A stretch of DNA of 64,000 nt from Octopus sinensis (taxonomy: Eukaryota). The number at the start of each line of letters is the position of its first letter. The first letter of the stretch is position 1. Where the stretch lies: positions 90,086,001-90,150,000 of the forward strand of contig NC_043003.1 of assembly GCF_006345805.1 (NCBI RefSeq). Direction: 5' to 3'. Shown piece after piece: positions 3,582-44,934 of the stretch. Under the pieces are notes generated by a model. That model was not told the DNA's origin, made no database searches, and saw nothing but the letters and a program-made list of their open reading frames with translations. A program made the position numbers and the translations under genes.

Positions 3582-3620
<39 letters not shown>

Positions 3621-4619: not shown

Positions 4620-4693
4620 CTGCAAAAAGAAATAATTGAACTTCAAAATACAAATTTTTGAAAACTGAAAAACCAAATGTGAAATGACATTGG

Positions 4694-4915: not shown

Positions 4916-4967
4916 CTCTTAGCATTCAGATTATTCAATCAAATCTAACACTTATTTATCCACATTG

Positions 4968-6522: not shown

Positions 6523-6561
<39 letters not shown>

Positions 6562-8312: not shown

Positions 8313-8585
8313 GGGTTAGTAGTGGATAAGAGCACAAGCTACTAACCCTCGGGTTCTAAGTTCAATCCAAGGCAGGGACTTGAAATATAATATCAACAGA
8401 AAAATAACATCAGCGACATACCTTAGGTATGAGAACACTGTACCCCATTAGTCAAATAAAGGGTTGGGTTTGAAATTCCACCAGAACACCTGATGAAGGC
8501 TGGAGAGTGCATCAGCCGAAATGTTGTGTTAATAACAAACAAGGTGAGGACACCTATCCGTACATTGTAAATAATGTACATAATC
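8313..8585 (+). mobile_element. tRNA-headed SINE-like element with a hammerhead-containing tail
   Basis: A-box-like TAGTAGTGGATAAG, B-box GTTCAATCC at 8360-8368, and a hammerhead core at 8485-8530. Confidence 0.6.
8485..8530 (+). ncRNA. Minimal type I hammerhead ribozyme motif (Penelope/dimeric type)
   Basis: Stem I AACAC/GTGTT, core CTGATGA plus one extra A, stem II GGCTG/CAGCC, GAAA, loop-less stem III, predicted cleavage triplet GUU. Confidence 0.6.
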
Positions 8586-8879
8586 CTCATCCCCACAAAA
8601 ATAGAGAAATATATAATGTATATGACCATCTTAACATCCACTATTCCATGCTCACATGGGTTGGACAGAATTTGGTGTGGCAGATTTTTTACAGCTGGAT
8701 GCTTTTCCTGTTGCCAGCCCACACCTGTTTCCAAATAAGGTAATATTTCCCCAAAACCAGACATGTTTTCACAGAAGACTGTAAATGAACATCACCACTT
8801 GCATGAAGGTGACACATTTTACAAACTATCATGCAAAGTTGAGGTAAATAGACTGTAACACCTACACACATATGTATAT

Positions 8880-9050
8880 ATACAATGAGCCTCTTTCAGT
8901 TTCCATCTGCCAAATCCACTCACAAGGCTTTGGTTGGCCCAAAGCTATAGCAGAAGTCATTTATGCAAGGTGCCGCACAATGAGTGAAACCAAATCCAAA
9001 ACCATGTGGTTGGGAAGAAAGCTTCTTGCTATACAGCTATGCTTGCATCT
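8880..9050 (-). mobile_element. Representative copy of an abundant SINE (other copies near 7.6, 11.7, 19.1, 37.4, 38.9, 39.9, 43.2, 56.1, 57.0 kb)
   Basis: Shared CAAAGCCTTGTGAGTGGATTTGG...GGAAACTGAAAGAAGCCC block. Confidence 0.7.
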
Positions 9051-10389
9051 ACTTTTTATTTAAATTATTTAAAGGTCACTGGATATTTATTAACAAAATC
9101 AATTTGAGCAACCAACTACAAGTACAAAAAAATAAATAAACAAAAAAAAAACCCCAGAAGATGCTTAAAGCTCCTTCTTTACTGATATCATTGCCAGGAC
9201 TGACTGCTTTCATCTTCTAGGTTTCAATAAAATATAAACTAGCCATTAAACAAGATTAATTCAATTGACTATAAACTTCCTCAATGATTTGCGGGTTTTG
9301 TACTAAGGTAGGGATAAGTGTCAGAGGTTAGATGGTAAGAGTAATGAGATGGGTTGTGTAGGGAGGAGGAGTCTAAGCTTATCCTATGTTATAAGGGTGA
9401 GTGCAATGGAACTTTGGCTTATGAGTTAAATTTGTTCTCAAAGGCTATTTGTCATCTAAACTGTTCATAAACTGAAACTATGTTTCCTATAGGAAATTCA
9501 AGAGAAGGCATGGAGAATTCTGACAGGGGCATGCAGTGAGTGAAAGCTAAACACTGACATTCTCCTGGTGATATTGCCAGCTTGTTGCCAACCATAGTTG
9601 CCACCTTGCATGGTCATTACTTGAGACACCATTCATCACCCAGGATGTTTTATGTTAAAAAAACTGTAAATTGATTTGCTAGTGATGTGAGGTGTTCACA
9701 AAACTGAGGTCCCACAGTAAAGGTGGCAGGCATGAAGGCAAAAGGGAACATGGAAAAGAGAAAATAGACAAGGTGGTGATGATCCAGAGAGAGCCAATGA
9801 AAGCAAGGGATGGGCCTCATGCTGGGTAGACCAAAGTGACAAGATGGTATTAAGATAGAAGAGAAGCTTTGGAGAGGGGAACGGTGAGAGAAGTTGCAAA
9901 GCATCACATGTAGTAAGACAAGAGATATGGATAGTGATAGGATAATGATTGTGGGGGAGTGATGAGGATGAGAGATATGAACAATAGAGAGATGACTGAA
10001 GTGGGGGTAGAGGGATGGAAGAGGGAAGGTGGGTATCTATAGAATAATGATAGTGGACAGTCTCTCATACATAAGCCTAGCAAAAAATGGGGAGAGGTAG
10101 TGACAGAGTGGTATAGGGGCTAGCAATTTATAGTTTGTAAGCTTCACAAATGGTGGGGAGATAAGAGATGGTGGGTATGAGTGATAGAGGGATGAGAAGA
10201 TTGAAGTGAATAGGGAGGTGTGTGAAAAAAGGAAGGTGGTCAACAGGTAGAGGAGAGGGGTATAAATGATGGTAGTAAATATAGGGTGGGCAAGCTAATG
10301 ATGTATATATCCACACACATATAAACATATATATATACATGCATATACACACATACATGTAAGTATGTACACATAGATATCCCAACTTT

Positions 10390-11590
10390 TATCATTATCA
10401 TCATTTCAATGCACATTTCATCATGGTTGGTTGGATTTTCTGCAGCACTACTTATCTACTTATTGTCAATTAATACTGTCCTTTGTCAGCCCCGCCCTCC
10501 GTGAGATGCATCATCTTTGGGTCACCATTTATCACTTCATTCCATGTCTTCCTTGGTCTCCCTCTTCCATAGCTTACACTAACATGGAGCATATGGCACT
10601 TCCTTATGCAGCAGTCATCCTCCATACACACATCATATGACCATACCAACAGTCTTCTCTCTTGCACACTATACCCATTCTCCTTATACTCAATTTTTCT
10701 CACAGCTCATAATGCACACTGACATTATGCATCTATCAGTGCATGCTAGCTTCTTTGTCTTTGCAGGTCTTCTGTATTCAAAGCCCACATCTCACTACCA
10801 TACAGGAGTTCGAACACATGGATCATACAATCTGCCCTTTACTCTGGAGGAGAAAGCCTTTGTCACCAGCAGAGGTAATAACTCCCTGAACTTTTTCAGC
10901 TAATTCTTCCCTACAGTACTTTAAGAGCGACCACATTCACTGCTAATTATGTCACCTAGATGCCTGGCATTTAAGAGAATCAATTTCTAGCATGCACTTA
11001 ATGCTTATTGCTCCAGTGCATCTGTCACATTCAAAGTCTGCTTTCTTTGCTAACCTGCCTGTAATTCCATATCTCTTGTGCACCCATAGCTTACACTGAG
11101 TATAACATAGGGAGTTGCTCCTTTTCTGCATATCATGCAAGGCTGTTTCCTTGAGGGTGCAAGGAACCTATCTAAGCTAAGTTTATTTTGAGGTCTCTTC
11201 TTGCTATGTATTATTTGGAATTTCTTCAAATTCCTCTATACAGTCTTCCATAAAAGCATATAGAAGTCCCCACAGACATCCAGTTTTTAACTCTTTTGTT
11301 GGTGGCATACAGAAACATGATGAAAAGAAGGCGATTGAGGATTGAGCTATGAAGGACATTCAAATTTATTACTGAACTCATTACTGACTCTTACTTTACA
11401 AACTACATCTTTATACCAGCTTGCACAATCCTCGCATACCATTCATCTATGTCTAGTCTTTTTAGACATCACTAAATTACCAAGTATGGCACTTTGTCAA
11501 AGGCCTTCTGCAAGTCAATGAATGCTAGATATAATAGCTTGTTCTCAGCTAAGTACTTTCCCTGCAGTTGCCTAACTAGAAAGATGGTAT
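10390..11590 (-). mobile_element. Older RTE-clade LINE remnant (RT fragment and C-terminus)
   Basis: Minus frames read PGRGTTDTIFLVRQLQGKYLAENKLLYLAFIDLQKAFDKVP, CTQCKLWVHKR and YGRGRPRKTWNEV, with stops. Confidence 0.75.
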
Positions 11591-14137
11591 CTGTGGTACC
11601 TCTTCCAGGCAGTGTGGTTAAAGTGTTCACTCTGCAACCACATGTTTTTGAGTTCAGTCCCAGTGATATCTTGGGCAAGTGTCTTTTACTGTAGTTCCAG
11701 GTCAATCAAAGACTTGTTAATGAATTTTGTAGATGGAGGATGAAAGAAGACCACTATATGTATGTTATGTATGTGTGTATCCCCTTGTCTTGACATTGCA
11801 TGTAAGTTGTAAACAAATGTCACTGTTACACAAGCAATGTTTTTTGCTGTAATCTTCTATGAAAACATTTTGAACGTTTGTACCATTTGCATTTAAAGGA
11901 CAAGAGGCAATATTATCTCAGATAGCAACAGGTGAGGGTTGGTGAGAGGAAGAGCATCTGGTCATAAAAGATTTGTTTCTATGAATCTCGTCTGACCCAT
12001 GCAAGCATGGAAAAGTGGGTGTTGAAACGATGTTAATGATATATGGCGTACAAAAAGACGTGTATACACAGATTTAAACACATCACTTCACCACCACCTC
12101 TCTCCTACTGACGTAGCCATGTATCTCTTTTACTGTAAGACACCTATTTCTGACCCTCTATCCATACTCTAACTTCTCATCACCTGGCACAAAGCCACTT
12201 CCCTCAATACTACTCCCCACTCAATTGAGGAGTCTTGCAAGAAGTTATTTGGGTAACCTTACTGCTGCTGGTGCCACACGTAAAAAAGCACCGAGTACAC
12301 TCTGTAAAGTAGTTGGCATTAGGAAGGGCATCCAGCCATAGAAACCGACTTGCCAGCTCCTGTCAATCTGTCCAACCCATGCCTGCATGGAAAATGGACG
12401 TTAAATGATGATGATGATGATGATGATAATTATGAAGATGCATACACACACCTTTATTTAACTTCGGCAAGAGTTAATAAATTGAGAAGTACTCCAGAGG
12501 TTTCATCCACATCTTGGTTGTCAAGAGAAATATTAAAATGGAGTCAAAGAGAGACTGTGAAATTGCTCCAAGATTATTTTTCTACTTGCAGCATTTTTGT
12601 GGTTACTGATCACATGAAGATGTAAACATCAACTGGCTAAAAGCCAAAATTAGACCCACCCATAACCTTAGTTGTTAAATTTCAATATGTTGAAATTCCA
12701 GAAGCAGACCAACTTTCTAAGTTGGTCTACTTCTCATGTCAATCTGAATACGACCAAAATCCAAGTTGATCGTGCCATCTACACATACATCATCCAAAAA
12801 TTACAATAGACTTCCCTGCGCAGTAGACTGTCTTAGTAATCAAAAGACAAAAACAATCTTTATAGATTTCCTATCGAACTAAACTGCGCATTCAAGTATG
12901 TTGTTTCATTTGAATTCAAGAAAAAAAAAAGTCATAGAAAAACTTCAATAAGTGACTAATTTAGTTGTTTCCTTGTTTATAAAACATTGTCATTGTGTGC
13001 AAGCCGTGTAATGCCAGTTGATAAGTGATTTACAATTTAATTATTTAATTACTTGAACTGTTATTTGCCCGTGATTGCTTTACTTTGTCAAAACTATGAC
13101 TTTTATCATATTTGTCTAATGCCTCTGAGAATTGCATGAAAGTTGCATAATCTCATTTCCTCTCGTTAAAAATCCAGATCTACATGAAAAAAAGTCCTCT
13201 TAATTCTGACGTGAAATTCAATATTACTGATGATCTAAGTCGATAAAAATATATTTAGAAAACAAAAAACAGAAGGTGAAATACGTTAGTAAAAAATGAT
13301 GAGAGAAAATATCTACTTTTTCGGAAAACCAAACGTTAGCTTAGTTCTTTAAGTTTACAAATTTTTTACGTTAACTTTGGCACACATTCTGTAGCCAATA
13401 GATTTAATCACTATTAATGAACCTATATTGGATCATAGACTCGCTACAGGTGATCCAAACGGAAAATAATAATATTGTTGCTCCTATTTTCTTCAATAAT
13501 TATTTTCAAATTTAGGCACACAGCCAGAAATTTTGAAGGGAGGGGGTTATTCGATACCATCAACTCTAGTATTTGATTGTTACTTTCATTAATTGCAGAA
13601 GGATGATAAAACTAATTAAAATATTTCACTACAGTCAAAATATAAGCAAAATTGCCAATTAATTAAGAACAACATATAATAAGATATTAAACAATTTATA
13701 GAGTTCATGACTTAAATCTTTATACATATTTAAAGTCATCTATTTATCTGCTATCAGTCAAAAAGGTTCGAATCTAAATATTAATTATAAACCGAAAACT
13801 AAGTTTCTAACTTCGACAATCATAATTGGAGACTTGACAAACTAAAAGTATATAAAGTATTATTTACTACGAATAACCTTATTTGTTACGCATTTATCTG
13901 CACAAGTATGTACAAAAAATAAAAATTGCTTTAAAATTAAGAATAGCTATCAGAAAAAAATGAGTGAAATTGGTCGAGAATGTCTATTCTTAGTAAGAAC
14001 AGCAAATCTTAAAGTGAATCCAAGTGAACAGCTCGCTGAAGCTGTAAGGTAATGTCTAAACTAAGACAACCCCTAAGGTCCTATTAATGTTAGGTATCAT
14101 CTTTACAATATATTCTTAGAGTGTATTCCTCACAGCC

Positions 14138-14194
14138 GTAGCAGAACCCAACTACGAAGAACCCAACTACGAAGAAGTAGTTGGGTTCTGCTAC
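14138..14194. repeat. Perfect 18-bp inverted repeat with an internal 15-bp duplication
   Basis: GTAGCAGAACCCAACTAC (14138-14155) is the exact reverse complement of GTAGTTGGGTTCTGCTAC (14177-14194). Confidence 0.95.
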
Positions 14195-14358
14195 TCATTT
14201 GTTGCGAATATGCAAACAATCCCGGATATCTTGTAAGCCTAGCAATTGTTTCCTCAATAAATAATATTAAACCCTGGTAACAATAAACATGTTGTTCCTT
14301 TCTTCGTTAATGAAACCTAACATTTTAATGTGGTTGGGAGAGGGATTTTTTTGTTGTT

Positions 14359-14409
<51 letters not shown>

Positions 14410-14781
14410 AATATATGTGTGTGTGTGTATATATAAACCATTGACAGCTGTGAGAACTCGGACAATATCACTCGTAATCATCTTGAAAGATTGCAACTGC
14501 TAAACGAAACAAATTTCTAAAAGTAACTACCATTAAGATTTGCTCTAAAGGGAACATATGTGTATATAAAGATGTTTCTGCTACTAGTAGTAATAATAAT
14601 AATAGAGAAAATATTGAGAAAGCCGGGCAGCAACAAAGGTGGAGGTAGATGAGGTGATTAGAAAGAATAGCATACGAACAAAATTCTTAAATTGACTTTT
14701 CGCTAAAACAGAGCAGTTATGTTAGTATACCTGTATACATTAAAAACAAGATATTGTCAAAATGAATAGATTCCGCTATAC

Positions 14782-14844
14782 CTGAAAATCATTTCGTGTG
14801 AAATCTATGCCTCTGACAAACGGTAACACCCCAGTGGCTGCCAT
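14782..14844 (-). CDS. FLII: Flightless-I coding exon 1: MAATGVLPFVRGIDFTRNDFQ
   Basis: Nearly invariant FLII N-terminus. ATG at 14844, donor CAG|gtatag, phase 0 joins exon 2 across a 10.2 kb intron. Confidence 0.97.
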
Positions 14845-15309: not shown

Positions 15310-17240
15310 ATGCTACAAAGGTAAAGGTAACGCTTTAGATACAAATAATAACTGAGGCATCAAGTTGTTAGATCCGGTAATGAAGGTCACGGAGTGGGTT
15401 ATAGCCCAACTAATTAGGGAGAGAGTCAGCTTAGATGAGATGCAGGGAAAAGCACCATTGATGCTATATTTCTGGTAAGACAGCTGCAGGAGAAATACCT
15501 AGACAAAGATAAACCCCTGTACCTGGCTTCTGTTGACATGGAGAAAGCCTTTGACAGGGTCCCCCGATCCCTTATCTGGTGGTCAATGAGGAAACTAGGG
15601 ATAGTAAGGTGAGAGCTGGCAACGAGTACAGGGAAGAAATCCGGGTAGAGGTAGGGGTCCAACAAGGTTCAGTCCTCAACCCCTTCCTTTCGATCATAGT
15701 CCTCCAGGCAATAACAGAGGAATTCAAGACAGCATGCCCCCGGGAGCTCCTCTATGCTTATGACCTTGCTGTAATTGCTGAGTCACTATCAGAACTGGAG
15801 GAGAAGTTTCAGGTGTGGAAGCAAGGATTAGAATTGAAGGGCCTTAGCGTCAACCTAGCTAAAACCAAAGTCCTAAAAAGTAGGAAGGTAGACAAGTCAC
15901 AAATGCCTTCAGGTAGATGGCCCTGTTCGATCTGTAGAAAAGGCATAGGTAGAAACTCCATAAGATGTACCCAGTGTAAGCTATGGACACAAGAGGTGCA
16001 GCAATATCAAAGGAAGGCTAACTGGGAGGATAGTTTTTGTATGTGGCAGATGCTCTGGTGCTATAAATAACACTGAAAATGTCCAGAGACCAACTTCCGC
16101 CACATTCAAGGGAAAAAAACTAGAAGTAGTTGATAGCTTCCATTACCTAGGTGACCAAGTCAGTAGCGGGGGAGGGTGCACTGAAAGTGTAGCTGCTAGA
16201 ATAAGAATAGACTGGGCTAAGTTCAGAGAGCTCTAACCTCTGCTGGTGACAAAGGGCCTCTCACTCAGAGTAAAAGGTAGACTGTACGACACATGTGTAC
16301 AAACAGCCATGCTACATGGCAGTGAAACATGGGCCGTGACTGCTGAGGACATGCGTAAGCTTGCAAGGAATGAAGCCAGTATGATCCGATGGATGTGTAA
16401 TGTCAGTGTGCATACTCGACAGAGTGTTAGTGCCCTGAGAGAAAGGTTGAACCTAAGAAGCATCAGATGTGGTGTGCAAGAGAGACGATTGCGCTGGTAT
16501 GGTCATGTGGTGAGAATAGATGTTGATAGCTGTGTGAAAAAGTGCCACACCCTAGCAGTTGAGGGAACCTGTGGAAGAGGTAGACCCAGGAAGACCTGGG
16601 ATGAGGTGGTGAAGCATGACCTTCAAACATTGGGCCTCACCGAGGCAATGACTAGTGACCGAAACCTTAGGAAATATGCTGTATGTGAGAAGACCCGGCA
16701 AGCCAAGTGAGACCATAACGCGTGGCTTATGCCAGGGCTGTAACCAGCCCACTTATACGTACCTTTCCTTCATTGGACACTAAACTTTGCTTGAGGCAAG
16801 TGAAATCGAAATCGAATCAAATTCGATGACTGTCACCCATGCCAGTGGAGCGCTAAGAGTACCATCTGAGTGTGATCGTTGCCAGAGAAGCTGACTGGCT
16901 TCTGTGCTGGTGTCATGTAAAAATGCCGGTGGCACGTGAAAAAACATTTGAATGAGGTCATTGCCAGTGCCGCTGGACTGGCTCCTGTGCAGGTGGCACG
17001 TAAAAAACACCATTTGAGTGTGGGCGTTGCCAGTACCGCCTGGCTGGCCCTCATGCCAGTGGCACGTAAAAGCACCCACTACACTCTTGGAGTGGTTGGT
17101 GTTAGGAAGGGCATCCAGCTGTAGAAACTCTGCCAGATCAGATTGGAGCCTGGTGCAGCCATCTGGTTCGCCAGACTTCAGTCAAATCGTCCAACTCATG
17201 CTAGCATGGAAAGCGGACGTTAAACCATGATGATGATGAT
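15310..17240 (+). mobile_element. 5'-truncated RTE-clade LINE (RT, C-terminus and 3' UTR), disrupted
   Basis: DMEKAFDRVP, GVQQGSVLNP, LLYAYDL and GRGRPRKTWDEV motifs, (GAT)n tail. Closely similar to the copy at 49.7-52.0 kb. Confidence 0.9.
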
Positions 17241-18270: not shown

Positions 18271-19329
18271 AGAAGACAACAAAGCAAATCCTCTGTTCAG
18301 ATATATTTAGTAGAGGATTTTCAATAGCAACATCAAACCCATTTAGCTCAGTCATGTCAAACTATAAAACTGCCAATGGTACTTATCTCTTTTCCAGTAC
18401 GCTATTGCAAGATTGGATATTGTACTCAAGCTAATAAAATACTTGTTAATATTGTCATTATCATTGTTAAGGGTTATTTTTCCATGCTTGCATTGACAGA
18501 TCAGATGGAAATCATTGAGGTAGATTTTCTGTGGACAGATCCCCTTCCTGTCACCAACCTTCACCTGCTTCCAAGCAAGGTATTTTCTTATTCCTTGCTG
18601 AACATATCTCCATGGAAGATTGTAAATGAACATCACTTGTGTGACAGTGACACATGTTTACAACTACCACACAATGTCAAGATGAGAAGACACTCACACA
18701 CATTATACATTGTCTGGGCATACATGCTATACGCATATAAGTTGTGGACTGGCTATATGATTCATCTCTGATCCTGTTCAGGTATGTGATGTTGATAAGC
18801 CACAAAAATGGTGAAACATCAAGGTCTGTCACTCTTGGATGGGATTAGAGGCGAGTTATCTCACTTGTCCATTAATTTCAGGTGTTTTAACACCTGGCAC
18901 TTTGAGAGAGTGTTCTCCACCATGCCAAATCACATATGCAAATATTTGGAACATATATATTAAGTGCATGTGGTTGATAATATATATATCATATGACATA
19001 CTCTTTACTTTACATACACACGCATATATATGATGGGCTTCTTTCTGATTCTGGCTACCAAATCCATTCACAAGGCTTTGATCAATCCAGGGATATAGTA
19101 GAAGACGCTTACCCAAGGTGCCATGTAGGGAGACTGAATCTCAAGCTACATGGTTGGAAAGCAGACTTCTTAACCATACAGCCCTTGTATAATTAATCTT
19201 TATATCATTACTAGCATTATGACCCGTCGTTGCCAGGTCATAGTGCTAGTGCATGTATATATATATGTGTACATATTACATGTACATCTATATATATACA
19301 TCTACACATAAAATACAAAATTATATCTT

Positions 19330-19663
19330 GATATCGCTAGTGATAACAATACTCAAAATATATAACAGACTGGAATTGTTAGCCCGTCTCTTGCAATTTC
19401 GATCAATTGTATCTTGTGCTCCCTCTTGTATAGAAGCATGGCTACAATCCAGCCTACCTCAACTTCTAGGGGGGGGGGGGCATTAAAAATTTTTATCCAG
19501 CACGTCCCAGATATAAAGGTAAAAATAAAATATTTCCAATTTGCGAGTTCGAGTCGAGTACTCCCTTGCATGCTCCGTTGACTCGAACCTTGCTTCTATT
19601 GTGGCGAATTTACCGCCTCTGGTTAGATATCTTTCATATTTTCAATGGTGCTTTCCTCCAGGT
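19330..19663 (-). pseudogene. Unit C, 3' part: degenerate Tx1-type ORF1 (the target element)
   Basis: Frameshifted translation HLEESTIENMKDI/YLTRGGKFATIEARFESTEHAREYST/IGNILFLPLYLGR/WIKIFNAPPPLEVEVGWIVA is colinear with the ORF1s at 23300-24601 and 25068-26465. Confidence 0.8.
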
Positions 19664-19907
19664 TGTTTTATTATTACCCACTAGGGGCGAACATAGATGG
19701 GACAATACAATCTGATGTGGGGTCAGACACACGAATGGGTTTTTACAATAAATCGAATTTAAAAATTTACATGAAATTACAAAATAGACACAAAATCGAA
19801 TGATGGAACAGACCGTAAGACATTACGGGTGGAGTGGGTGCGGGTTTAGCTCGGACCCCACGAGCCCCGCCTCCCCACTGATACTTTTGGTTTCGTTTGG
19901 TTTACAT

Positions 19908-22900
19908 TTATGTTGTATCTTTCACTCGCAACTTACGTGCTACATCTTTCCATCGTTCTTCATACACTCTCCTAGTCAGGCATATTCTCTCCAGCCCTAT
20001 CTTCCTTTTCAGGTGAAAGATGAAATAATTCATCAAACCAGGGCCGGAGATGAACTTGCCTGACTGTAGACCTTTCATTCTCGTCTTCCATATCACCTCT
20101 TTCGCAATTGCTACTACAACGAGAAAACAAAACTTACCTTCTTTCGCGAGGAAATCCGGTGGGTCAATTTTTGTAATCGACTCAGTCGACAGCTGTACTC
20201 TTCGTGTACCTGACAACAGCTGTTCGGTATAAAACCACACCTCAGACACGTCCGGACAATGAACAATAGCGTGCGGGACGGTTTCCCTATCCCACCCGCA
20301 TCTTGGACATATCGGACTGTCTTGGCCTCCGTGCCTTGCGAGTTTATCCCGAACAGGTAGAGCTCCTCTGTAACATTGCTATGCCAGGGACTTCTGGAAG
20401 TTGTCCAGTGTCTTCGGCTTGAACGTACGTCAGAACAGACTGGCCAGCTGATTATCGTCGAGACCTAGGGCTTCTCCCAAGGTATCTTCACATTCCGCCT
20501 CTACCAACCCTCTATAGAAGAATGTGGTGGAACCCCCACTGCAGGTGTTACCCGAGCGACGGAATAGCAGGAGAGCCTTGCGACACTCCGTGTACCAAGT
20601 ACCAAGTTTCGATCTACGATTCAGCCAGGTTTCCCATCCACCGAAACTAGTGAACTTGGGAAACATCAGTTTTGCTAGCGAAGACCACACCCGTTCACCA
20701 TCCAGATAGAGCCACAGATGTCTTAACCTCAGCGCATGTCTGCGCATCATCAGCCAAGGCATCCCTAGCCCACCCTTTAACGGTTGTTGACAGCAAGTAG
20801 AGCGTTTCACAAGTGGTTTCCGGCCCTTCCACAAGAAGTAGAAGAGCTGTCTTTCCAACTTGATCAACCACGAATCAGGGCAAGGAACGACGGAAAGGCG
20901 GTAGGTGATAACCGATGCGATAAACACATTGGCCACCTCCGCCCTCCCTTTCAAGGATAGCCACCGCCAAGACCAGGTCTTGGCTACTGCAGCCACCTTG
21001 CTCGTTACCTCGCCCCAATTCTTCTCTATTTGGAGGTCTGGACCGAACCAGACCCCTAGCAATTTAATCGGACCCTCCGTCCAACGTCCCACGACGCTGT
21101 CAGGAGGCATCGACTTGCCTCTCCAGGTGCCGAGTTGCAAGCCGACTGACTTTTCGCGATTAACTTTTGCTCCTGTCACCGTCTCGTAAACCTCTATGGA
21201 CTTGCCTACTTTACATAGGTGGTCCATTTCGGTTACGATGATGGTGATGTCATCCGCGTACGCTGACACTGATTTTCCATTACCTGGCTGTCTCAGGATG
21301 CCGCTCAGTTTTCGCAGTAATGGCTCAAGAGCCATCACGTACAAAAGCGGGGAGAGCGGACACCCTTGACGAACCGAGCGTTTGATTTTGAACAGCTTCG
21401 ACAAGAAGCCGTTCACCCGAACTACCGAGTCGATGTTATCATAAATTTGGATAATCCACCTGAGGAAGCCAAGGCTCAGCCCGAACCGTGCCAGGGCAGA
21501 TACCAGGTAACGATGGTCGACCCTATCAAAAGCTTTAGATTGGTCTAAATGGACCAGTGCCCCACCCTTGCCAGAATCACTATTAAACCCCTCTATAGTG
21601 TACCGCATTAGATGGAGATTATCCTGAATGGATCTGCCCGGAACGGCACATGTCTGTGCCCCTCCGATCAGACCATCCGCGACACGCGCCAATCTTTTCG
21701 ATAACACTTTGGCCAAAATCTTCAACTCTGTGTTTAGCAGAGTGATGGGCCTGAAATTATCAATGCACTCCCCCTTGCTCGAGTCCTTTCTGACGAGAGT
21801 CACTACTCCCCGGTGCACAGATCTGGGTATAAGCCCGTTCTGCTGCCAGTTCGCATAGACCTCCGCCAGTAGGTGCCCGAACAAGTCTGGCATACTCTTA
21901 TATAACTCATAGGGTAGACCATCCAAACCCGGCGCCTTGCCCGCGCCGCAGTCCGCCATTGCCTCAACCACCTCCTCAGGCGTGATTGGCCCTTCACAGC
22001 CCTCCGCATCTCGCCCCGATAAGCGCGGCAGCCCGTCAAGAAGGTCCGTAAAGGCCCTCCTCCTATCCAGTCCGCCGCACTCACCGAAAAGCTGAGCGAA
22101 GTGCTCCTGAAAGGCCTCACACATCTCCTTGAGTTCGTTTATCAACTCACCTTGTTGGTTCGTCAAAGATCGAATCGTGGCATCGTTACCATGCTGTGCT
22201 TCCACCACTCGGGCCCATCTCACGGCGTTGATTCCTTCACATCCCATATGGCGGATTCTAGCCCTGACAATGCAGCCCATGTGTTTGGCCTCGAGGTGCT
22301 GGTTTAACACCAGTCTCTTGGACGCCACCTGAGCCGCAGAGCCAGTTTTCAAGGCTTCCTCTAATTCCTTAACTAGAGTAGTTTCCCTTCTAGCCTCTCT
22401 AGCCACTACTCCTATGCTATATCTAATTGACTCGAACCGATGGCTCGTTTGAGGGCGTACCACCATTTGTTATTAATGATGGTACCAGATAGTGCCCTCT
22501 GAATTATATCCCTAATCCGGTCTTTGTACTCCTTAATCGCCAAAAGGGACGTATTAAGTTTCCAGTAAGCGGATCCTCTATTTTTAACCTTATCTATGTC
22601 AAGCTTACAGGTGACCATTTTATGATCACTGTAGCTGATCGGGTAAAACTGTGGACACTTAGCTATTTTTCTGTCTACTTTTCTAATTAGTATTCTATCT
22701 AATTATGACCTGGAAGATCCGTCGCTGTTTGACCATGTCCACAATGGAGCGTTCGGAAATTCCAGCCTATAAGGATCTGCTAGCTCAAAGCGGCTTAACA
22801 GTTCCATGAAGCCACTGTTACCTTTTCTATCTGAACGCGAGCCAACACAATCTACATCCGCTTTGCAAATTGTGTTAAAGTCACCTAGCACAACTAATGA

Positions 22901-23290
22901 ATGCGAAGTACCAAGAAAGTTTTCTAGTTCACGAAAATAATCACTTTGCCCTGTATGGTTGAGTGCGTATATTGCAACCAGTCTGATAACTTTACCGTTA
23001 CTGAACGTCAAATCCATGACGACCAGCCTACCTTCTGGATCTGCAAAAATTAACTTTTTCTCAGAAACCCGGTTTCTTTTTATTAGGACCAACACCCCAC
23101 TTCCGCCAGGAGAGAAAAAACTCTCATAGCCGTCAAACAGTGGGAGTAGACCTCTTGGCCCCTCTAACCGGGTTTCTGTAGCAACAATAACATCTAAATT
23201 ACGCGACCTGATATCATGCAGGAAGCGACCTTGCTTCCAGCCTGCTCCCAGGCCGCGCACATTCAAACAACCAACATAAATGTAATCCAT
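19908..23290 (-). pseudogene. Unit B ORF2 (AP endonuclease, reverse transcriptase, C-terminal zinc finger) with three in-frame stops and one frameshift
   Basis: EN motifs LNVRG, TETR, LGDFN, (Y>*)LDRI and SDH. RT motifs NFRPITLLN, DQSKAFDRV, RQGCPLSP and AYADD. Finger CPRC..ETVPHAIVHC. Stops at 22703-22705, 20430-20432 and 20379-20381; frameshift near 22440. Confidence 0.92.
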
Positions 23291-23299
23291 TACTTACCT

Positions 23300-24601
23300 T
23301 TATATCAGTGGTTCAGTTTTCTCTTTTTCTTCTTTGTTTATCTCTTTTTCTGGGCCTCGTGGGGGAGTCTGATGTAGGCCCTCGAATATATATGGAGATG
23401 TTAAATCCATTCTGAGCGGGCCTACGTCATGAAAGAATTCGGACTTTATCCGCCCGTAATCCTTCCGGCCTATTCTGTAAACTATATAGTCATTCTTTTT
23501 TCCTATTCTTTCCACTTTGGCCATAGCTGCCAACACGTTCCCGAGTCTGTTGTTTGATGCCTTAACGGCCATATATGAGTTCATCGACTCTCTTTTCTTC
23601 TTTTGGATCACTCTTGGAGGGGTGGTTTCCGTTTTTCTTTTTTTTCTGGTGATTTTTGACCACCCCTCCTCATTGCTCTTTTTTTCCTCTGCCGCTGGTT
23701 CTGCTGCCTCTGTCACTTCCACACCTTCAGTTGTCTCTTCTGGGCCGCCCGGCGCTGCTTCTGGTGACACTTCATCTTCTTTTTCACCTGGCTGAGGTGC
23801 TTCCTGCGGTTTGGGTTGGGGTTGGCATTCCGCCCTTACATGACCCTTCTTGCCGCAGCCGAAGCACCTCGGCTTTCTGCCCTCTACGAAAACTGTTATT
23901 CTATCGTCTTCACTTATTTTTAGGGTTTCTGGAATCTCCTCCAGTGTTTGAATTTCTGCCTGAATGGCTATTACTATCCGCTGCCCTTTCCAAAATTCCT
24001 CCTCCTCTACTGTGGCCTGGAGGATGTTTATTTTTTCCTCTGGCGGAATGTTATTCATCGTGATTTTCGATGTTCTTTTTCCTCTATACAAGGGGAGGAG
24101 AACAATGTTCTCCGCTTTTATTGGCTCCATCGACAGTTTTTTTGCTATCTCCTCTGTTGTGAAACGCACCTCTACTGTGCCGTATCTCTTTTCTCTGTTG
24201 ATGTATGTGATCTTGTCCATTAATGGTTTTAAACAATTCTCGATTTTTTTTTCCTCAATTTTTTGTATCATTTTGGTTGTCGTATTAAAGGTCTTATAGA
24301 TTATTCTTCTTTTTTCGATTTCTTCATGTTTTTGGGCGTTTGAGACCACTGTCACTTCCGTGCCCTCTTTTGTAACACAGTCCGCATATTTTTCCAAGTC
24401 TTCGACGTTTATTTTTTTGATTTTCTTGCCAGCTACTTCTGAGAATTTTTTCGCTGGTGCTGGTGCTGGTGCAGGGGTTTCCTTTTTCTTTGGCGCCACC
24501 ACCTCTTTTTTCTTTGGCGACACCACCTCTTTTTTCTTTGGCAACACTGCCGGAGATTCTTCTTCACTAGTCACGGGAGAATATGAGATGGGGGATTCCA
24601 T
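23300..24601 (-). CDS. Unit B ORF1 (gag-like, one CCHC knuckle), 433 aa, open
   Basis: First ATG (MESPISY) at 24601; knuckle CFGCGKKGHVRAEC; TAA 9 nt before the ORF2 ATG. Confidence 0.85.
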   Translation of the reverse strand: MESPISYSPVTSEEESPAVLPKKKEVVSPKKKEVVAPKKKETPAPAPAPAKKFSEVAGKKIKKINVEDLEKYADCVTKEGTEVTVVSNAQKHEEIEKRRIIYKTFNTTTKMIQKIEEKKIENCLKPLMDKITYINREKRYGTVEVRFTTEEIAKKLSMEPIKAENIVLLPLYRGKRTSKITMNNIPPEEKINILQATVEEEEFWKGQRIVIAIQAEIQTLEEIPETLKISEDDRITVFVEGRKPRCFGCGKKGHVRAECQPQPKPQEAPQPGEKEDEVSPEAAPGGPEETTEGVEVTEAAEPAAEEKKSNEEGWSKITRKKRKTETTPPRVIQKKKRESMNSYMAVKASNNRLGNVLAAMAKVERIGKKNDYIVYRIGRKDYGRIKSEFFHDVGPLRMDLTSPYIFEGLHQTPPRGPEKEINKEEKEKTEPLI

Positions 24602-24828
24602 CTCGAACAACTGGCTTAACAAGCCCTTGGTAAATCCAAGATAAATGATATTTTTTCCCCCACGAAGGGGGGAACACCACCACGGAGTCCTCGCACGAAG
24701 GCTGACTTCAACAGTTGTACAACAATAAACAAAGACAGGTAGACACACAGTAGAATATAACGGAGAGAATAAATACGACGGCAAAATATAATAACTTACT
24801 ATACACGCAAATAGCTTTCCTCCAGGTG

Positions 24829-26595
24829 ATTTTATTACTACCCACAAGGGGCGAACATAGATGGGACAGTACAATCGGGGAACTTAAAATAAGAAAGCAA
24901 ATGACAAGAAAAGGAAAAAATAAAATAAAAAAATGACATATGAAAGAATATTTACAATGAGATGTAAATGCCCACTCGATCCCCGGAATCGAGAGGTTAC
25001 ATTTTCGTCACATATATTTCACAATATTTTCTTTTTTCTCTTCTTTCTTCTCTCTCTTCTCACAATTCTATACGTATTCCATAATAGTTTTCAATTCTCT
25101 AAAGTCAATCACTGAGCCCTCAGGCAGCCGCTCTCTCACTCGAACACTCGTGTAAAACGTTACACTCTCTCCGGCAGCTCTGAGGAACTCAGCGACTCTT
25201 TCTTCGGGGATTAGAGCAGTCTCCTGCCACTGATCAGTCATCCTGTTGACCCATATATGTCCCTCCGTATTACATGTCAATTCTTTCATTTCAGGGCAGA
25301 AATGGAAGGTTACTAACTTGTAGAAGCAGTAATCTTGTTTCCGTCCTACGTTTTCCCTCGTTTTTCTTTTCGGGCTTATTTCTTCCTTGTTCTCCTCTCT
25401 TTGTTTCTCTCTTTTTGCCTTCTTTTCTTTCTTCTTCCTTCTCTTGTCTTTTTGGTTCTTTGTCTGTTCTCTCTTTCTCTCGTGTTTTATGTTCCTTTTC
25501 TTTTTCTTTTTGTGTGCCGTCTTTTCTTTTCGTTTGATTCTGATCTCTCTCTTGTTTTTTTCCTGTTGTTTCTTTTTCCTTTTTTTTTCCTGACTCTGTT
25601 TTGGTTCTATTTCTTTCTTTTCTTTTATTTCTTTTTCCTTCATTGACTTATTATTTCCTTTCTCTTGTTGTTTTGTTTCCTTTTCTATGTTTTCTTTTTC
25701 ATTTACCGTATTCTTCTTTTCTTCAAGTTCCTGCTCGCACTCCGCTACAAATTCGTATAACGGGCACTCTTTTTTAATGTGCCCCCTTGTCCCGCACAAG
25801 TAGCAGTTTGGCTTTCTTCCCTCTACAATTACACTGAGGGTTTTCTCATCTTCAATTTCTATTCTGTAGGGGAACCTTTCAATGTCCTCTTTTGTGGCCA
25901 TCAAACACAGTTCTACCCCATATCCTCTCCAGTTTACCGCGTTGGACTCCTTAAAGGATTCCACCTCCACTTCCTCTTCTGCTGCTCCTAGAATAGCTGT
26001 TGCCAGCCATTCTGTTTTCACTTCTGGGGGTATATTCGGGATTTTAACCCGGACCCCTCTTCTTCCCTTGTATGAGGGCCACATTATAAATGTTTCCGCT
26101 CTTAGTACAGTGGTAGCCAGTGAGGCTGCAATTTCTTCCGTTGCACATCTCACCTCCACCGTACCAAATTTCTTGCCTCTACTCACGTAGGTCGATTTCC
26201 CCATTATGTCTCCCAGACATTTTTCGATTTCTGCTATCTCCACTCTTGCCAGTTTCTTTGTATTTTTGTCTTGGGTTCTATATGTTACAGTCTTGTTTTC
26301 TTTGTCCTCTTTTGCTTTCGCGGGGGGGATTAGCTTCACGCTATCACCCTCCCTTTTGAATAGCTTTTCATATTCTTTGAGTTTACTCTTCTCAAAGAAA
26401 ACATCCTTCACGATTATCGACGAATCATTATTTTTCTTTCCCGTGACCCCCGCGTAAGTCGCCATGACTAGAGGGTCAATTCACCTTCTTCGGAAGGTTT
26501 CCACACGTGGAGGCAAACGCCTCGCGCGATATTAATCACTTTACACAACAAAATTTCAACGTCTAATCACAGATAACAACACGTATAGCTTGGAG
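24829..26595 (-). mobile_element. Unit A: 1767-nt ORF1-only (half-LINE/HAL1-like) Tx1-type element
   Basis: About 130-nt 5' UTR, one ORF, about 240-nt 3' UTR ending in the same tail as unit B, no EN or RT sequence. Flanked by CACCTGG at 26596-26602 and 24822-24828. Confidence 0.8.
25068..26465 (-). CDS. Unit A ORF1 (gag-like, CCHC knuckle, Lys/Glu-rich tail), 465 aa, open
   Basis: Knuckle CYLCGTRGHIKKEC. YVSRGKKFGTVEVR and VIVEGRKPNC align with B ORF1 YINREKRYGTVEVR and VFVEGRKPRC. Confidence 0.88.
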   Translation of the reverse strand: MATYAGVTGKKNNDSSIIVKDVFFEKSKLKEYEKLFKREGDSVKLIPPAKAKEDKENKTVTYRTQDKNTKKLARVEIAEIEKCLGDIMGKSTYVSRGKKFGTVEVRCATEEIAASLATTVLRAETFIMWPSYKGRRGVRVKIPNIPPEVKTEWLATAILGAAEEEVEVESFKESNAVNWRGYGVELCLMATKEDIERFPYRIEIEDEKTLSVIVEGRKPNCYLCGTRGHIKKECPLYEFVAECEQELEEKKNTVNEKENIEKETKQQEKGNNKSMKEKEIKEKKEIEPKQSQEKKRKKKQQEKNKREIRIKRKEKTAHKKKKKRNIKHERKREQTKNQKDKRRKKKEKKAKREKQREENKEEISPKRKTRENVGRKQDYCFYKLVTFHFCPEMKELTCNTEGHIWVNRMTDQWQETALIPEERVAEFLRAAGESVTFYTSVRVRERLPEGSVIDFRELKTIMEYV

Positions 26596-26760
26596 CCAGG
26601 TGTTCAAATCTTCTTTTTTCTCTACATTGTATACTTTATAGACAATAGTCTTTTCTTCAATTTAATTTTTTATTATCCATCTGGACTATTCCATTTCTGC
26701 ACGCTAATTTTATTTTTAATTTATTCCCATTCATGTGAAACCACTTATTCAAGTTCAAGT
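26596..26760 (-). pseudogene. Unit C, 5' part: upstream half of the split ORF1
   Basis: Translates IEEKTIVYKVYNVEKK, then (with a 1-nt indel in an A run) RRFEHL, which continues into EESTIEN at 19660. Colinear with B IEKRRIIYKTFNTTTKMIQKIEEKKIEN. Confidence 0.75.
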
Positions 26761-26924
26761 CATTGATGCAATTTTATACCAATTGCTATTTTTACTTTTG
26801 TTATGTCAAGATTTACTTATTATATTATACTTTAGTTTGATTTTAATTATTACTTACTACATATACTTCAATTGTTATTATTATCTCTAATTTTTATTGT
26901 TAAAGTGAAAGTATCTGACATAAA

Positions 26925-27150
26925 ATAGAGAAATGTTTTTGTTTCACTTTTAACACATAATACTGAAATAGTGGAGAAGATATGATATTGCTATGGGCTC
27001 GCTCTAGGCAAGAAGTTGAACATTTTTTTTGCCCATGAAACTACATGGACCCTAAGTAAGGCATGTGTAAAATTTGAATGAAATTGGTTGAGTAGTTCTC
27101 AAGTTTTAGGGAAACAGACAGACACACATTCTCAGTTTTATATATAGAGA
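26925..27150 (+). mobile_element. Non-autonomous Helitron/Helentron-like repeat
   Basis: Ends in CAGACAGACACACATTCTCAGTTTTATATATATAGAG, similar to the tails at 63180 and 63840. Confidence 0.45.
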
Positions 27151-28079
27151 GATTTATCATTACTGAAAGTGGTATGTTGGTAGAAACATCTTGCAGCATT
27201 TTTGTCTTGAGTACATTCTTTGTTGAAGTGTACAACAAAGATAAACTAATTACCAGTAATATGTTGTATTCAATTGAATTAGCAACATGACTGAAATCCT
27301 TTCAGAACAGAATCACAACTAAGTTATTTTTAAAATATATATGCCTGTAATTTACTAAAACAAAGCATAAATCTGATAGTGTTTCAACCTAGAAATCATA
27401 TATAGATTCAGAGTTATATAACAGGTTTCTTTTTTATTGCGTATAAAGTGTTTTATTTTAGAGATTGCGAAAATGGAATATTGTGGCATTCTATTTCAAG
27501 TTATGAGAGCTGTAACCTTTTTGATACCAACCCACCTGAGACTGCTCCTGGTTCTTTGTCACAAACTTCCTCTTTTAATATGATCTAAATTAAAACATTA
27601 CATCAAATAACATTTTGGGCTAATTTATGTGCCAAACATTACTTTAACCCTTTAGCACTCAGATTACTTTGTCAAATGTAATGCTTATTTATTCAGATTT
27701 TAAAAAATCAATCTTGTATTACCTTGTAGCTTTGAAATTTCAAAGATGCGATTATTTTTAGAATGACATTGCAGGGTAGGTGTGGGAAGCTAGATCTGGC
27801 CAGTTTGGAAGTAAAAATGATAGACTGGATGTGGTCTGTTTAAATATATTTTTTTCAAATTCTATATTATTTTCATAATGCAAACAAAGGTAGTGTTTTA
27901 CAACAAAATGGTACAAATAATAAATGAAGTCAAATAGCTCTGACCAGCACTCAAACTCATATCACATATTTAACTAGCCAGGAATTTATTTCTTACTCTT
28001 TAGTGCTCACTATACACCGTGAACGTATATTTCATGTATTTGGTGATTTGTCTGAAGTTGAAAAAGGAAGGATTTGGAA

Positions 28080-28760: not shown

Positions 28761-29172
28761 TGAAGGTATGCCTCAAGAACAGAACAGTTTACAAGTTGCT
28801 CTTTTTCCGTGGTTTTTGGACCAAGACATGACTCAATCTTTAGCTGCCCAATTCTCCAAATTTGGTCCCAAAGTTGAAATCCTTGTAAGGTTACGAATTT
28901 CAGAGGCTAGGAGAGATTGATGAAAATGTGTTCCAAAATGGGGAAAAAATGTTGAGAGCAGCGTATCAACAAGCGAGAAAAAATACCTTTGAACGAGATA
29001 AGTCTCTTCAAAACATTTGTGCTCTTTGGTTAAGAAACTTGCATTCCAACCATGTAGTCTCCAGTTCAGTAATACCACTACAAGGTATCTTGGGTAAGTG
29101 TTCCCTACTATATCCTTGGGCCAACCAAAGCTTTGTGAATGAATATGGTAGACAGAAATTGAAAGGAGCCAG

Positions 29173-29208
<36 letters not shown>

Positions 29209-42790: not shown

Positions 42791-44934
42791 TGATAGTATA
42801 CTGTCTTAAAATTTCAATATTTGTATATTAAAGCAGAACAATGACTGTAATACTAAAATAACAACTAATCCAAATGCACCAAACTGGTTAGGTACTGCTG
42901 TTTAGTTGCAGCAGTCTCTCCCTCTACTAGGTTATGCTTACAGATTGATTTGATTACAAAAAGTGTGTGCCTACATTTTAGCTCCAATTACAAGGATTTG
43001 CATTAAACTGAATGTTACACCAATTATTTGCACTAAATGATCTATGTCTTGAATAGAGGTGAAGCACATACCCAGAAAAACCTTCAACATTCCACTTTCT
43101 CTACTAAACAGTTTTCTGATTTCCTTCTCATCCCACATCTTCACAGAATGTGATCACCTTCTTGCTGCTAATGGTCTATAAACATTAACAAATATGAACA
43201 ATTTAGTCTTGAGCAAGTGTCTTCTACTATAGCCTCAGGCCAACCAAAGCCTTGTGAGTGGATTTGGGAGATGGGAACTGAAAGAAGCCCATCATATATG
43301 TGTGTGTGTTTGTGTATGCTTATGCCTCCTTGTCTTGACATCACATAATAGTTGTAAATGAGTGTCACTGTCTTACAAGCAGTGTCATTTGTTCAAGGGA
43401 AACATATTTGGATATGGGGAAATATTACCTAACATGGAAACAGGTGAGAGTTGGCAACAGGAACAAGCATCCAGACACAGAAAATCTGCCTCAATAAATT
43501 CTGTCCATCTCATGCAAGTACGGAAATAATGATGATGAAATTTTTGAGAGTAAAATAGTAGTGGTATGCACAATTTTGATTAGGTCCCTATTCAATTACT
43601 AGTTTTATGTTAATTTTTCTAACTCATGCCAGCATGGAAAAATGGATTTTAAAATGATGATGATGACGACTGCATAAATTAGTATTAAACAACTATCTTC
43701 AATCCACTAAATTTGAAAAATCTGAAAATTACAACTTAGTCAATTTATTAGAAAAGTATTCATGTCATGTTTCTTTAAAATGAAATTAAAATTTTCCAAT
43801 TCTAAAATATATTAATATTGGATCAGCTAGTTAACCACTCTCAAATGCTATGTCTTATCTTTGGCAGGTAAAAAAACCCACAAAACAAATCACACATTTT
43901 TTGGATTATTCCCACTATGGGCAAGTGCCTTCTACTATAGCTTCAGGCTGACAAATGTCTTGCAAGTGCAATTGGTAAACAGAATATGTATGGAAGCCCA
44001 TTATATGTGTATGCATAATGGCACACACACACAATTGTAGTCATGGCTAGTGCTGATGATGTGTGCAAGACACCCATGCTGGTGACATGTAAAAGGTACC
44101 TGTGCTGGCAACACAGAAAAGACACCCAGTACACTCTATGGAGTGGTTGGTGTTAGAAACCTATCCAACCAAAGAAACCAAGCCAAAAGAGACTGGAGTC
44201 TTGTACAGCTTTCTGGTTTATCAGTTCCAGTCAAACTGTCTTAGCCATGCCAGCACAAGCCTTCACCACTGAAAAAAAAAGTCATCTGTGTGGGTCGGCA
44301 AATAGCAATGCTGTTGGATCCTTACATGTTGAGATTGATGAGAGAATCCATTACGCACACACACACACAAAGCGGGTTAAATAAATTATGCCTAATTCAT
44401 GCAAGCATTGAGAAAACAAATGTTAAAATGATGATGTCTAGATATAAAATACATTTCTGGGTTATGATTAAACTCAGGGAAATTTACAACTATTTATAAC
44501 ATGGTAAAAACCCTGCCAAATCAGACTGGAACCTGATGCAGCTCTCCAGCTTACCAGTTCCAGTGAAACCATCTAACCCATGCCAGTAGATGCTAAAGGA
44601 TGATGATGATGATGATGGTTAGAATGATTTTATTCACTATATCATGGAACCAGTTTACTATTAGAAAATACCATGTTGTTAAAAAGAGTCAAAAGGAATA
44701 CGACTTTAAGAAAACTAGACAAAACCTTAATGATGCTATGAGAGATGGGAAATGATAACAGATTTATAGATTATGGTTTTATCAGTTTGGAATATAATCC
44801 AAAAGGAGTATTTAGATCTAGGTTTTGTTGTGATTTAGTGTAGTTTAGAATTAGTTTTAGAAAGGATAATCCTAGGATACTTACAACAATAGAGTTTGAT
44901 GTCGAGACTAAGGCATTGCATTGTGAATCACTAA

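Follow-up and report, generated by a model that had tools for sequence, protein, structure and literature searches.

Element A, 1767 nt long, lies in a 64,000-nt stretch of Octopus sinensis DNA (contig NC_043003.1, positions 90,086,001 to 90,150,000; hereafter the window, to whose forward strand all window coordinates refer) next to element B, a full-length L1/Tx1-like long interspersed nuclear element (LINE) which, like A, is read on the minus strand. Our results support the conclusion that A is a member of a multi-copy octopus family of 'half-LINEs', which contain the first open reading frame (ORF) of a LINE, ORF1, without ORF2, and that it is not a LINE that underwent a local deletion. Very probably, A is a copy, belonging to a subfamily that we call beta, of a non-autonomous non-long-terminal-repeat family made up of a 5' untranslated region (UTR), a gag-like ORF1 and a 3' UTR, without ORF2, and the family would be mobilised into arrays by B-type LINEs. 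An earlier note on the window had already proposed that A retrotransposed as an ORF1-only unit. The number and uniform length of the copies, the subfamilies extending across chromosomes and the lack of an ORF2 belonging to the units bear this out, and the situation that the note had named as speaking against its proposal, a single-copy A nearly identical to a full-length family, was looked for and is not the one encountered.

Element A, its copies and its partner

A has the extent that the earlier note had given it (Table 1), with a leader of 130 nt and a 3' UTR of 239 nt. Its ORF1 is open over 465 codons and codes for a CCHC zinc knuckle, both as claimed (Pfam zf-CCHC, 22.4 bits at a cut-off of 20.8). 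A look-up of this exact ORF1 sequence gave no recorded entry. When an intact B-type ORF2 of 1130 amino acids (aa) was compared with A by tblastn, no match below E = 1 was obtained, in agreement with the absence of an ORF2 remnant that had been noticed before. Over 206 aa, as far as the knuckle, the ORF1 proteins of A and B share 35% identity (E 4e-40); beyond the knuckle they show no similarity. DNA similarity between the two elements is confined to the last ~47-50 nt (92%), which had been described as a B-type tail, and to the 14 nt following both tails (ACCTGGAGGAAAGC); the 5' ends and the remaining parts of the 3' UTRs are unalignable. Since the ORF1 of A, rightly called divergent in the note, is only 35% identical to that of B, a recent origin of A by deletion within B can be discarded, and B is not an autonomous partner from which A was derived by internal deletion. 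It may derive from an older or unseen relative of B.

A protein search with the ORF1 of A yielded six Octopus proteins, 77-93% identical to it and annotated as 'uncharacterized', and through such a search six loci (L001-L006) were found in the O. vulgaris assembly GCA_951406725.2. The loci are distributed over four chromosomes (OX597814, OX597816, OX597820 and OX597830) and contain 24 more A units of 1736-1768 nt, all of them ORF1-only, which are the same-length copies that the earlier note had suggested looking for. One relative, A2, is 72% identical to A, 1618 nt long and likewise ORF1-only. Each A and A2 unit spans the sequence from the conserved start CGTGTTGTTATCTG to the tail. The note had also asked whether any full-length element carries this ORF1: ~30 A-type or A-like units were examined, and not one of them is succeeded by its own ORF2. 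Taking into account that A2 is already ORF1-only at 72% identity and saturated synonymous divergence (dS), the ORF1-only state must be old.

The ORF2 of the window copy of B is broken in at least two places, and the B copy of L002 (11101-16297) has an intact ORF2 of 1130 aa. Relatives of B carry the Pfam domains PF03372, PF00078 and PF13966 (APE endonuclease, reverse transcriptase (RT) and zf-RVT, respectively). Among solved structures the best match of the B RT is human L1 ORF2p (E 7e-49, compared with 1.5e-23 for R2), which, as far as sequence comparison goes, places B in the L1/Tx1 group. B has an APE-type endonuclease and an RT in ORF2, a separate ORF1 and target-specific insertion, all features of the Tx1 clade, for which specific insertion into another transposon is typical (PMC4494074), though target specificity is not universal; on these grounds B can be regarded as a candidate member of this clade. 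In a repeat annotation of O. vulgaris published in 2026, 13 L1-Tx1 families with 421 recent (young) insertions were listed (PMC13282606). The N-terminal part of the B ORF1 in the window contains three tandem 24-nt repeats (24480-24551) coding for PKKKEVV-like motifs.

Of the 47 terminal positions, 39 do not vary among the 31 tails compared from A, A2 and B, whereas the rest of A and B is beyond DNA alignment. By analogy, this is the pattern of a 'stringent' LINE/SINE (short interspersed nuclear element) pair, in which the RT would recognise a specific 3' end (Kajikawa and Okada 2002, as cited in PMC4494074).

That the 5' UTR and most of the 3' UTR of A are unrelated to those of B, and its ORF1 only 35% related, could also mean that A depends on an unseen autonomous LINE combining an A-type ORF1, an ORF2 and the same tail, and that B is a mere co-resident. 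Such a partner would be in line with the existence of several B-like LINE lineages, for example the LINE of another O. vulgaris locus, L008, whose ORF2 is 74-85% identical to that of B, and with the occurrence of the tail core in elements inserted at other targets. We nevertheless regard this explanation as unlikely: an A-type ORF1 followed by its own ORF2 is missing among all ~30 units, A2 had already reached the ORF1-only state, and it is B that has the same 47-nt tail, the exact insertion point and, in one copy, an intact ORF2.

Insertion site and array structure

All A, A2 and B insertions are located at one nucleotide of a host repeat, T, which is ~1 kb long and is split by the insertions into a left and a right arm; homology between the window and the O. 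vulgaris loci ends at the same two points. B occupies this nucleotide, flanked by target copies, in the window and in L002, L003, L005 and L006, and in L004 it has the same 5' junction, with the 3' end outside the view. The tails end with ...AATAAAA and one or two more bases, and in all 30 junctions examined they are followed by a version of the target string, whose form is (C)AC(A/C)TGGAGGAAAGC. Pristine target, (C/A)ACCTGGAGGAAAGC, is found in the window at 24814-24828 and 19650-19664. Beside the right arm the target is always pristine, reading ACCTGGAGGAAAGC in the window and ACATGGAGGAAAGC in the O. vulgaris loci. At the 5' side of B it is nearly so, and between A units the copies are increasingly degenerate. 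The target copy is followed by a few variable extra bases and then by the conserved 5' start.

The 7-bp target-site duplication (TSD) that the earlier note had called clean does exist, with CACCTGG standing directly outside both ends of A (26596-26602 and 24822-24828, minus-strand reading), but it is only the exact part of a recurrent degenerate target copy: the upstream CACCTGG-CTCC-AAGC and the downstream CACCTGG-AGGA-AAGC match at 11/15 positions, the first 7 bp exactly. Position 4 is a C at all three window junctions, a variant belonging to the T copy in the window. The O. vulgaris target copies never have C at this position; they read mostly CACATGG or CACATCG, and CACGTG in L001 and L004. 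Because the variant is private to this T copy and occurs at all three junctions, it can be argued that at least 7 bp were duplicated locally. In L002, the other array with a single A, the A unit lies between perfect 18-bp repeats (CACATGGCTCCAAGCTAT).

The 5' junction blocks are hypervariable even though the bodies of the units are 97-100% identical. In L003 and L006 they differ among units whose bodies are 99% identical, and in L003 at least six of the seven 5' junctions are different. Some junction strings recur: L003 and L006 have CACATCGAGGAAATTTACCCACGTGTG in common, and the window shares the CTCC variant with L002. The recurrence suggests that the RNA carries along some of the target-like 5' sequence, having been transcribed from a point within or ahead of the target of the source copy. 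Homology may then serve to join the 5' end, a proposal already made for other LINEs with a specific target (PMC4494074).

The units stand head-to-tail, with 1, 2, 3, 4, at least 7 and at least 8 of them per array, and a single B copy terminates every array whose downstream end is visible (the window and L002 to L006). Three subfamilies, alpha, beta and gamma, can be distinguished among the 25 A units, and A2 represents a fourth, more distant lineage. Alpha units are mutually 98-100% identical, with ~99% identity on three chromosomes, beta units, the window copy included, are mutually 97-99% identical, and gamma is 91-94% identical to alpha and beta. With a, b and g standing for the subfamilies, the arrays read from the left to the right arm as aaabbbb... 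(L001), ...aaaaaaaB (L003), aggB (L004), g-A2-B (L005), aabbB (L006) and bB (L002 and the window). The order from left to right is alpha, beta, gamma, A2, B, with no reversal in the four arrays containing more than one subfamily. The stratified order is what repeated insertion at the target copy beside the left arm would give; the multiplication of one block as a whole does not account for it.

Unequal crossing-over or segmental duplication of a block consisting of T with A and B inside it could, in a satellite-like manner, have produced the arrays at the DNA level only, without A ever having retrotransposed. The T-A(n)-B-T layout is the same at every locus, T, with its TSD of 8 bp, may itself move and take its cargo along, and the adjacent units 5-7 of L001 are 99.8-100% identical and have identical junctions; because of these three neighbours, unequal crossing-over has to be reckoned with as a process that also shapes the arrays. 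However, the satellite-like pattern, in which neighbours are most alike and have the same junctions, is true of these three units and false for most arrays. Identity across arrays and chromosomes reaches 99-99.8%, whereas that of adjacent units is often 92-97%: unit 3 of L001 and unit 1 of L004, which are 51 Mb apart, differ at 3/1755 sites, while they differ from their own neighbours at 53 and 134 sites, respectively. Moreover, the parts of locus pairs have diverged unequally (identities of 82-91% for the right arms, 94-97% for the left arms, 93-99% for B and up to 99.8% for A), the 5' junctions vary among near-identical units, the subfamily order is constant, and tail and target are also found with structurally different elements (B, A2 and the C-type units described below). 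An origin of the arrays by DNA amplification alone appears, if anything, slightly less likely than the dependence on an unseen partner.

The arrays are internal, 52-157 Mb along O. vulgaris chromosomes of 80-226 Mb, and have T arms on both sides. They are thus not located at chromosome ends, as telomeric arrays would be.

ORF1 and the proposed mechanism

The ratios of nonsynonymous to synonymous substitution rates (dN/dS) between the subfamily consensuses were 0.18 (alpha-beta), 0.20 (alpha-gamma) and 0.14 (alpha-A2), and 0.06-0.11 for the part of ORF1 preceding the Lys/Glu-rich linker. The third codon position accounted for 30/50, 53/87 and 34/63 of the differences (p = 3e-4, 3e-7 and 2e-3). 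ORF1 is kept under purifying selection along the master lineage of the family. The selection is seen from Met88 onward only; in the first 87 codons the differences are denser and evenly distributed over the codon positions, indicating no coding constraint. The frame of these codons depends on a poly-C run, which consists of 6 C in most alpha and beta copies, causing a frameshift, of 7 C in seven units including that of the window, and of 10-14 C in two gamma units. As a consequence of having 6 C and not 7, the alpha and beta consensuses are frameshifted in this part, and the gamma consensus is the only one to keep a 468-aa form. About ten of the 25 A units have an ORF of 379-381 aa. Since the first 87 codons are unconstrained, and frameshifted in two consensuses, the conserved product is taken to be ~380 aa long.

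The 465-aa ORF of the earlier note is thus present in the window copy, but it is longer than the conserved one. That the ORF was intact also holds in part: the frame is open, but in comparison with its 24 relatives it has lost 1 nt near 25585 and 8 nt near 25415, both deletions being private to this copy, because of which ~57 codons of the Lys/Glu-rich (AG-rich) linker are out of the family frame. The ORF remains open since the AG-rich region has no stops in that frame.

The C-terminal domain of A-type ORF1 is kept in A, A2 and the A-like relatives in two further loci, L007 and L008 (38-46%). Its only matches among 1.84 billion representatives were octopus proteins of the A type (P0004) and the A-like type (P0010). 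Repeated matches of two long repeat proteins from bacteria to a 31-aa stretch were discarded as spurious. A search with the region from Met88 through the knuckle gave only 2 matches and was uninformative on the spread among species, and the predicted structure of ORF1 (P0001, alignment of 10 sequences) was unusable, with a mean predicted local distance difference test score (pLDDT) of 37.

Purifying selection on the ORF, together with the NCBI gene models that exist for several copies, would also be expected of a host gene family, that is, a LINE gag domesticated like L1TD1 of mammals and residing in a tandem gene cluster. This is very improbable, as most copies are frameshifted or truncated, every unit has a LINE tail and stands at a LINE target inside a repeat, and the subfamilies succeed one another like those of a transposon. 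The possibility that A is a one-off remnant of a full-length LINE that lost its ORF2 here and never moved alone, which might be suspected from the adjoining full-length LINE with the same tail, can be dismissed for practical purposes in view of the 24 further units of the same length and structure on four chromosomes, the ORF1 only 35% identical to that of B, the unrelated UTRs and the lack of any ORF2 trace.

The mechanism that we propose for the mobilisation of A by B-type LINEs is as follows. The endonuclease/RT protein of a B-type L1/Tx1-like LINE would nick a single site just 5' of (C)AC(A/C)TGGAGGAAAGC inside the ~1-kb dispersed repeat T, would recognise the 47-nt 3' tail common to A and B, and would reverse-transcribe the A RNA at this target. 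Each insertion would leave a more or less faithful copy of the target on its 5' side, beside the left arm of T, and because of this copy the site could be hit again. In this way the arrays would grow head-to-tail, with the phylogenetically youngest subfamily beside the left arm and, in this target, B beside the right arm. The ORF1 protein of A (~380 aa, composed of an N-terminal region, the CCHC knuckle, the Lys/Glu-rich linker and the orphan C-terminal domain) presumably packages its own RNA in cis and would be needed for propagation, which would explain why purifying selection has preserved this ORF1 in spite of its low identity of 35% to that of B.

Mobilisation of A in trans by B-type ORF2p is deduced from the shared tail and insertion site, and several observations weigh against the model. 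A hairpin stem was predicted in the tail, but its energy was no better than that of shuffled sequences (z = -0.6 and -1.0); between the A and B tails of the window there is one compensatory change in the predicted stem, from C-G to U-A, but this pairing is lost elsewhere among the copies. The B copies of L002 and L006 (14867-19760) are 99.1% identical, whereas the T arms around them are only 91-94% identical, which gives these B copies an apparent age equal to or below that of the beta units on their left, in conflict with strict growth at the left end; this suggests very recent insertion or gene conversion, or entry at the pristine right-hand target. An empty, a B-only or an A-only copy of T was found neither in the window nor in any locus, and the rule that A is always accompanied by B in T is biased, because all loci were found through the ORF1 of A. 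The long form of ORF1 (465-468 aa) is present in only 2/25 A units, the window copy and L001 7406-9164. Single-copy variants, used as a neutral control for selection, also had a low ratio of nonsynonymous to synonymous polymorphism (pN/pS, 0.23), probably owing to unsampled sub-subfamilies and to transition bias, and since they did not provide a clean control, the codon-position test is the firmer evidence. Finally, the three nearly identical neighbours of L001 belong here, too.

Host repeat, other lineages and known systems

T itself (19211-27154, including A and B) has the appearance of an independent transposable element. In the window T and its cargo are enclosed by a perfect 8-bp direct repeat (TAATGATA), and no terminal inverted repeats are evident. 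The left arms of the T copies differ by substitutions only. Since the outer flanks are unrelated between the loci, these are paralogous copies of T and not orthologues; an orthologous relationship to the window was considered and rejected, as homology does not extend past the limits of T. A TA-rich microsatellite borders T in other loci. An inverted copy of the final ~130 nt of the right arm is found in L004 (8421-8562) just upstream of the left arm, suggesting two T copies arranged tail to head in opposite orientation. The string ACCTGG had raised the suspicion that the target could be a small nuclear RNA or other RNA gene (a U1-like pseudogene), but a search of the window with Rfam at gathering thresholds gave no match, and a permissive scan of the right arm produced only spurious microRNA-like matches in the TA-rich microsatellite. 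The coordinates of the features are collected in Table 1.

Table 1. Positions of A, B, T and their parts in the window
Feature	Position	Strand	Remarks
Element A	24829-26595	-	1767 nt; beta subfamily; 98.5% identical to beta consensus
5' UTR of A	26466-26583	-	opens with family-conserved start CGTGTTGTTATCTGTGATTAGA; alignments to all units begin here
ORF1 of A, ATG to stop	25068-26465	-	465 aa + stop
Poly-C tract of A	26322-26328	-	7 C in window copy; length sets frame of first 87 codons
Conserved ORF of A, Met88 to stop	25068-26204	-	~380 aa in alpha and beta consensuses; under purifying selection
CCHC zinc knuckle of A ORF1	25761-25808	-	residues 220-235; Pfam PF00098
Lys/Glu-rich low-complexity region of A ORF1	25371-25733	-	holds the two private deletions
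C-terminal domain of A ORF1	25071-25370	-	~100 aa; orphan, specific to A-type ORF1
3' tail common to A and B	24830-24876	-	47 nt; GATTGTAYTGTCCCATCTATGTTCGCCCCTWGTGGGTARTAATAAAA; 39/47 columns invariant in 31 tails
Upstream copy of target start	26596-26602	-	CACCTGG
Variable 5' junction block	26584-26595	-	CTCCAAGCTATA; degenerate target continuation (AGGAAAGC) + extra bases
Target-site copy between A tail and B 5' end	24814-24828	-	CACCTGGAGGAAAGC
Pristine target-site copy after B tail	19650-19664	-	AACCTGGAGGAAAGC
Left arm of T	26603-27154	-	~550 nt, upstream of insertion site; 94-97% to L001, L002, L004, L005, L006
Right arm of T	19211-19649	-	82-91% to L002, L003, L005, L006; common end ...AATGCTAG
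Left 8-bp direct repeat around T + cargo	27155-27162	.	TAATGATA; direct reading
Right 8-bp direct repeat around T + cargo	19203-19210	.	TAATGATA
Element B	19665-24813	-	full-length L1/Tx1-like LINE
B ORF1	23300-24601	-	
B APE endonuclease fragment	22703-23290	-	Exo_endo_phos, PF03372
B reverse transcriptase ORF	20430-22466	-	RVT_1, PF00078
B C-terminal fragment	19908-20249	-	

Outside the right arm of T, starting ~20 nt past the TSD copy, there is a short dispersed repeat (18900-19182), which is also found at ~7 other places of the window (for example 29021-29182, 56018-56178, 43208-43313 and 8863-9037). Its copies are 70-78% identical and ~100-180 nt long, and could be SINEs. Two ORFs of 163 and 154 aa on the plus strand (15579-16710) resemble RT and C-terminal fragments of another, unrelated LINE.

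A third gag-only lineage, the C-type, has an ORF1 36% identical to that of B and 28% identical to that of A, and ends with the same tail core (...CCCCTGGTGGGTAATAAAGAAA). C-type units were located in L005 (8594-10286), L007 (8637-10262) and L008 (2439-4123 and 11137-12874). In L005 the unit occupies the leftmost slot in the same T target, and in L007 and L008 the relatives are followed by other target strings, TCAGAAACGTYAGCACGCC and CATCGATACTC, respectively. L008 (~2400-14800; O. vulgaris OX597818.1, ~96.86-96.90 Mb) lies between two haemocyanin genes and contains, at the CATCGATACTC-type target, a mixed head-to-tail array of a C-type unit, the full-length B-like LINE mentioned above, an A-like unit, a C-type unit and an A-like unit (A-like identities 65-69%). 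Here the LINE is not the last element. To judge from these sequences, several gag-only lineages seem to use several related, differently targeted LINEs. A still wider interpretation, to which we would give slightly less than an even chance, is that octopuses harbour an ancient guild, active to this day, made up of three or more gag-only lineages (A, A2/A-like and C-type) with their own selected ORF1s (that of the A-type with an orphan C-terminal domain) and a shared tail core. They would be mobilised by several L1/Tx1-like LINEs of differing endonuclease specificity and form ordered arrays at 'safe-harbour' sites in other repeats, a non-telomeric analogue of HeT-A/TART in which the order of the array equals the history of insertions.

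ORF1-only LINE derivatives are rare, and they bear on the question why a non-autonomous element keeps a gag-like protein when SINEs need none. In the octopus family ORF1 is under selection, the 47-nt tail and the target nucleotide are both defined, the partner ORF2 is intact in at least one copy, and the order of the arrays apparently records the insertions. With these handles, cis-preference, tail recognition, endonuclease specificity and the formation of 5' junctions are therefore testable in one system. The arrays also indicate that HeT-A-like array building is possible away from telomeres. For the annotation of cephalopod genomes it follows that 'uncharacterized protein' genes of the A type are better treated as transposon copies. 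In a non-exhaustive search of the literature no description of such an octopus system was found.

In a 2018 review three ORF1-encoding non-autonomous LINEs were listed, HeT-A (Jockey), HAL1 (L1) and Ag-Sponge (CR1) (PMC5786205). Like these, A is a unit that encodes ORF1, lacks ORF2, has been inserted independently many times and has a 3' end of the partner type. The comparison with HAL1 and HeT-A that had been drawn in the earlier note, and its idea of target sharing, proved apt, since A, A2 and B are all inserted at the same nucleotide of T. HAL1s, which arose several times (PMC5753468; PMC5786205), are non-autonomous derivatives of the L1 group that encode only ORF1p and presumably use the ORF2p of a partner. 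They are dispersed, poly(A)-tailed and without target specificity, whereas A carries the same specific 47-nt tail as its partner, is inserted at a single nucleotide of one host repeat, forms arrays and has a CCHC knuckle in ORF1. Ag-Sponge of Anopheles is likewise an ORF1-encoding, bipartite non-autonomous LINE, but belongs to another clade; it was compared by its description only, and neither target specificity nor arrays are described for it in that review (PMC5786205).

With respect to insertion into another transposon, B resembles Tx1L in Tx1D of Xenopus and Tx1-Mar in Mariner-N4_AMi of crocodilians, which are APE-type LINEs with a specific site in such an element. In crocodilians Tx1-Mar shares this target with a non-autonomous partner, SINEU, and there are nested or adjacent copies (PMC4494074). 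Unlike A, which keeps a selected ORF1, the crocodilian SINE partners have no coding capacity.

HeT-A of the Drosophila telomeres shares with A that it is a gag-only element accompanied by RT-encoding relatives (TART/TAHRE), is site-targeted and forms mixed head-to-tail arrays (PMC5786205; PMC13534243). Its gag was described, according to a title cited in PMC5786205, as having an internal frameshift and a length-polymorphic region, to which the poly-C tract of A, varying between 6 and 14 C among copies, can be likened. HeT-A, a member of the Jockey clade, is attached to the ends of chromosomes, whereas the octopus arrays are internal, lie in a dispersed repeat and are bounded by the target, the RT of the partner is nearest to L1 ORF2p, and no host function is suggested. 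The octopus system thus combines a selected gag-only element with a stringent shared tail, a single-nucleotide target in a dispersed repeat and ordered internal arrays, and is a cephalopod counterpart of HAL1 and HeT-A.

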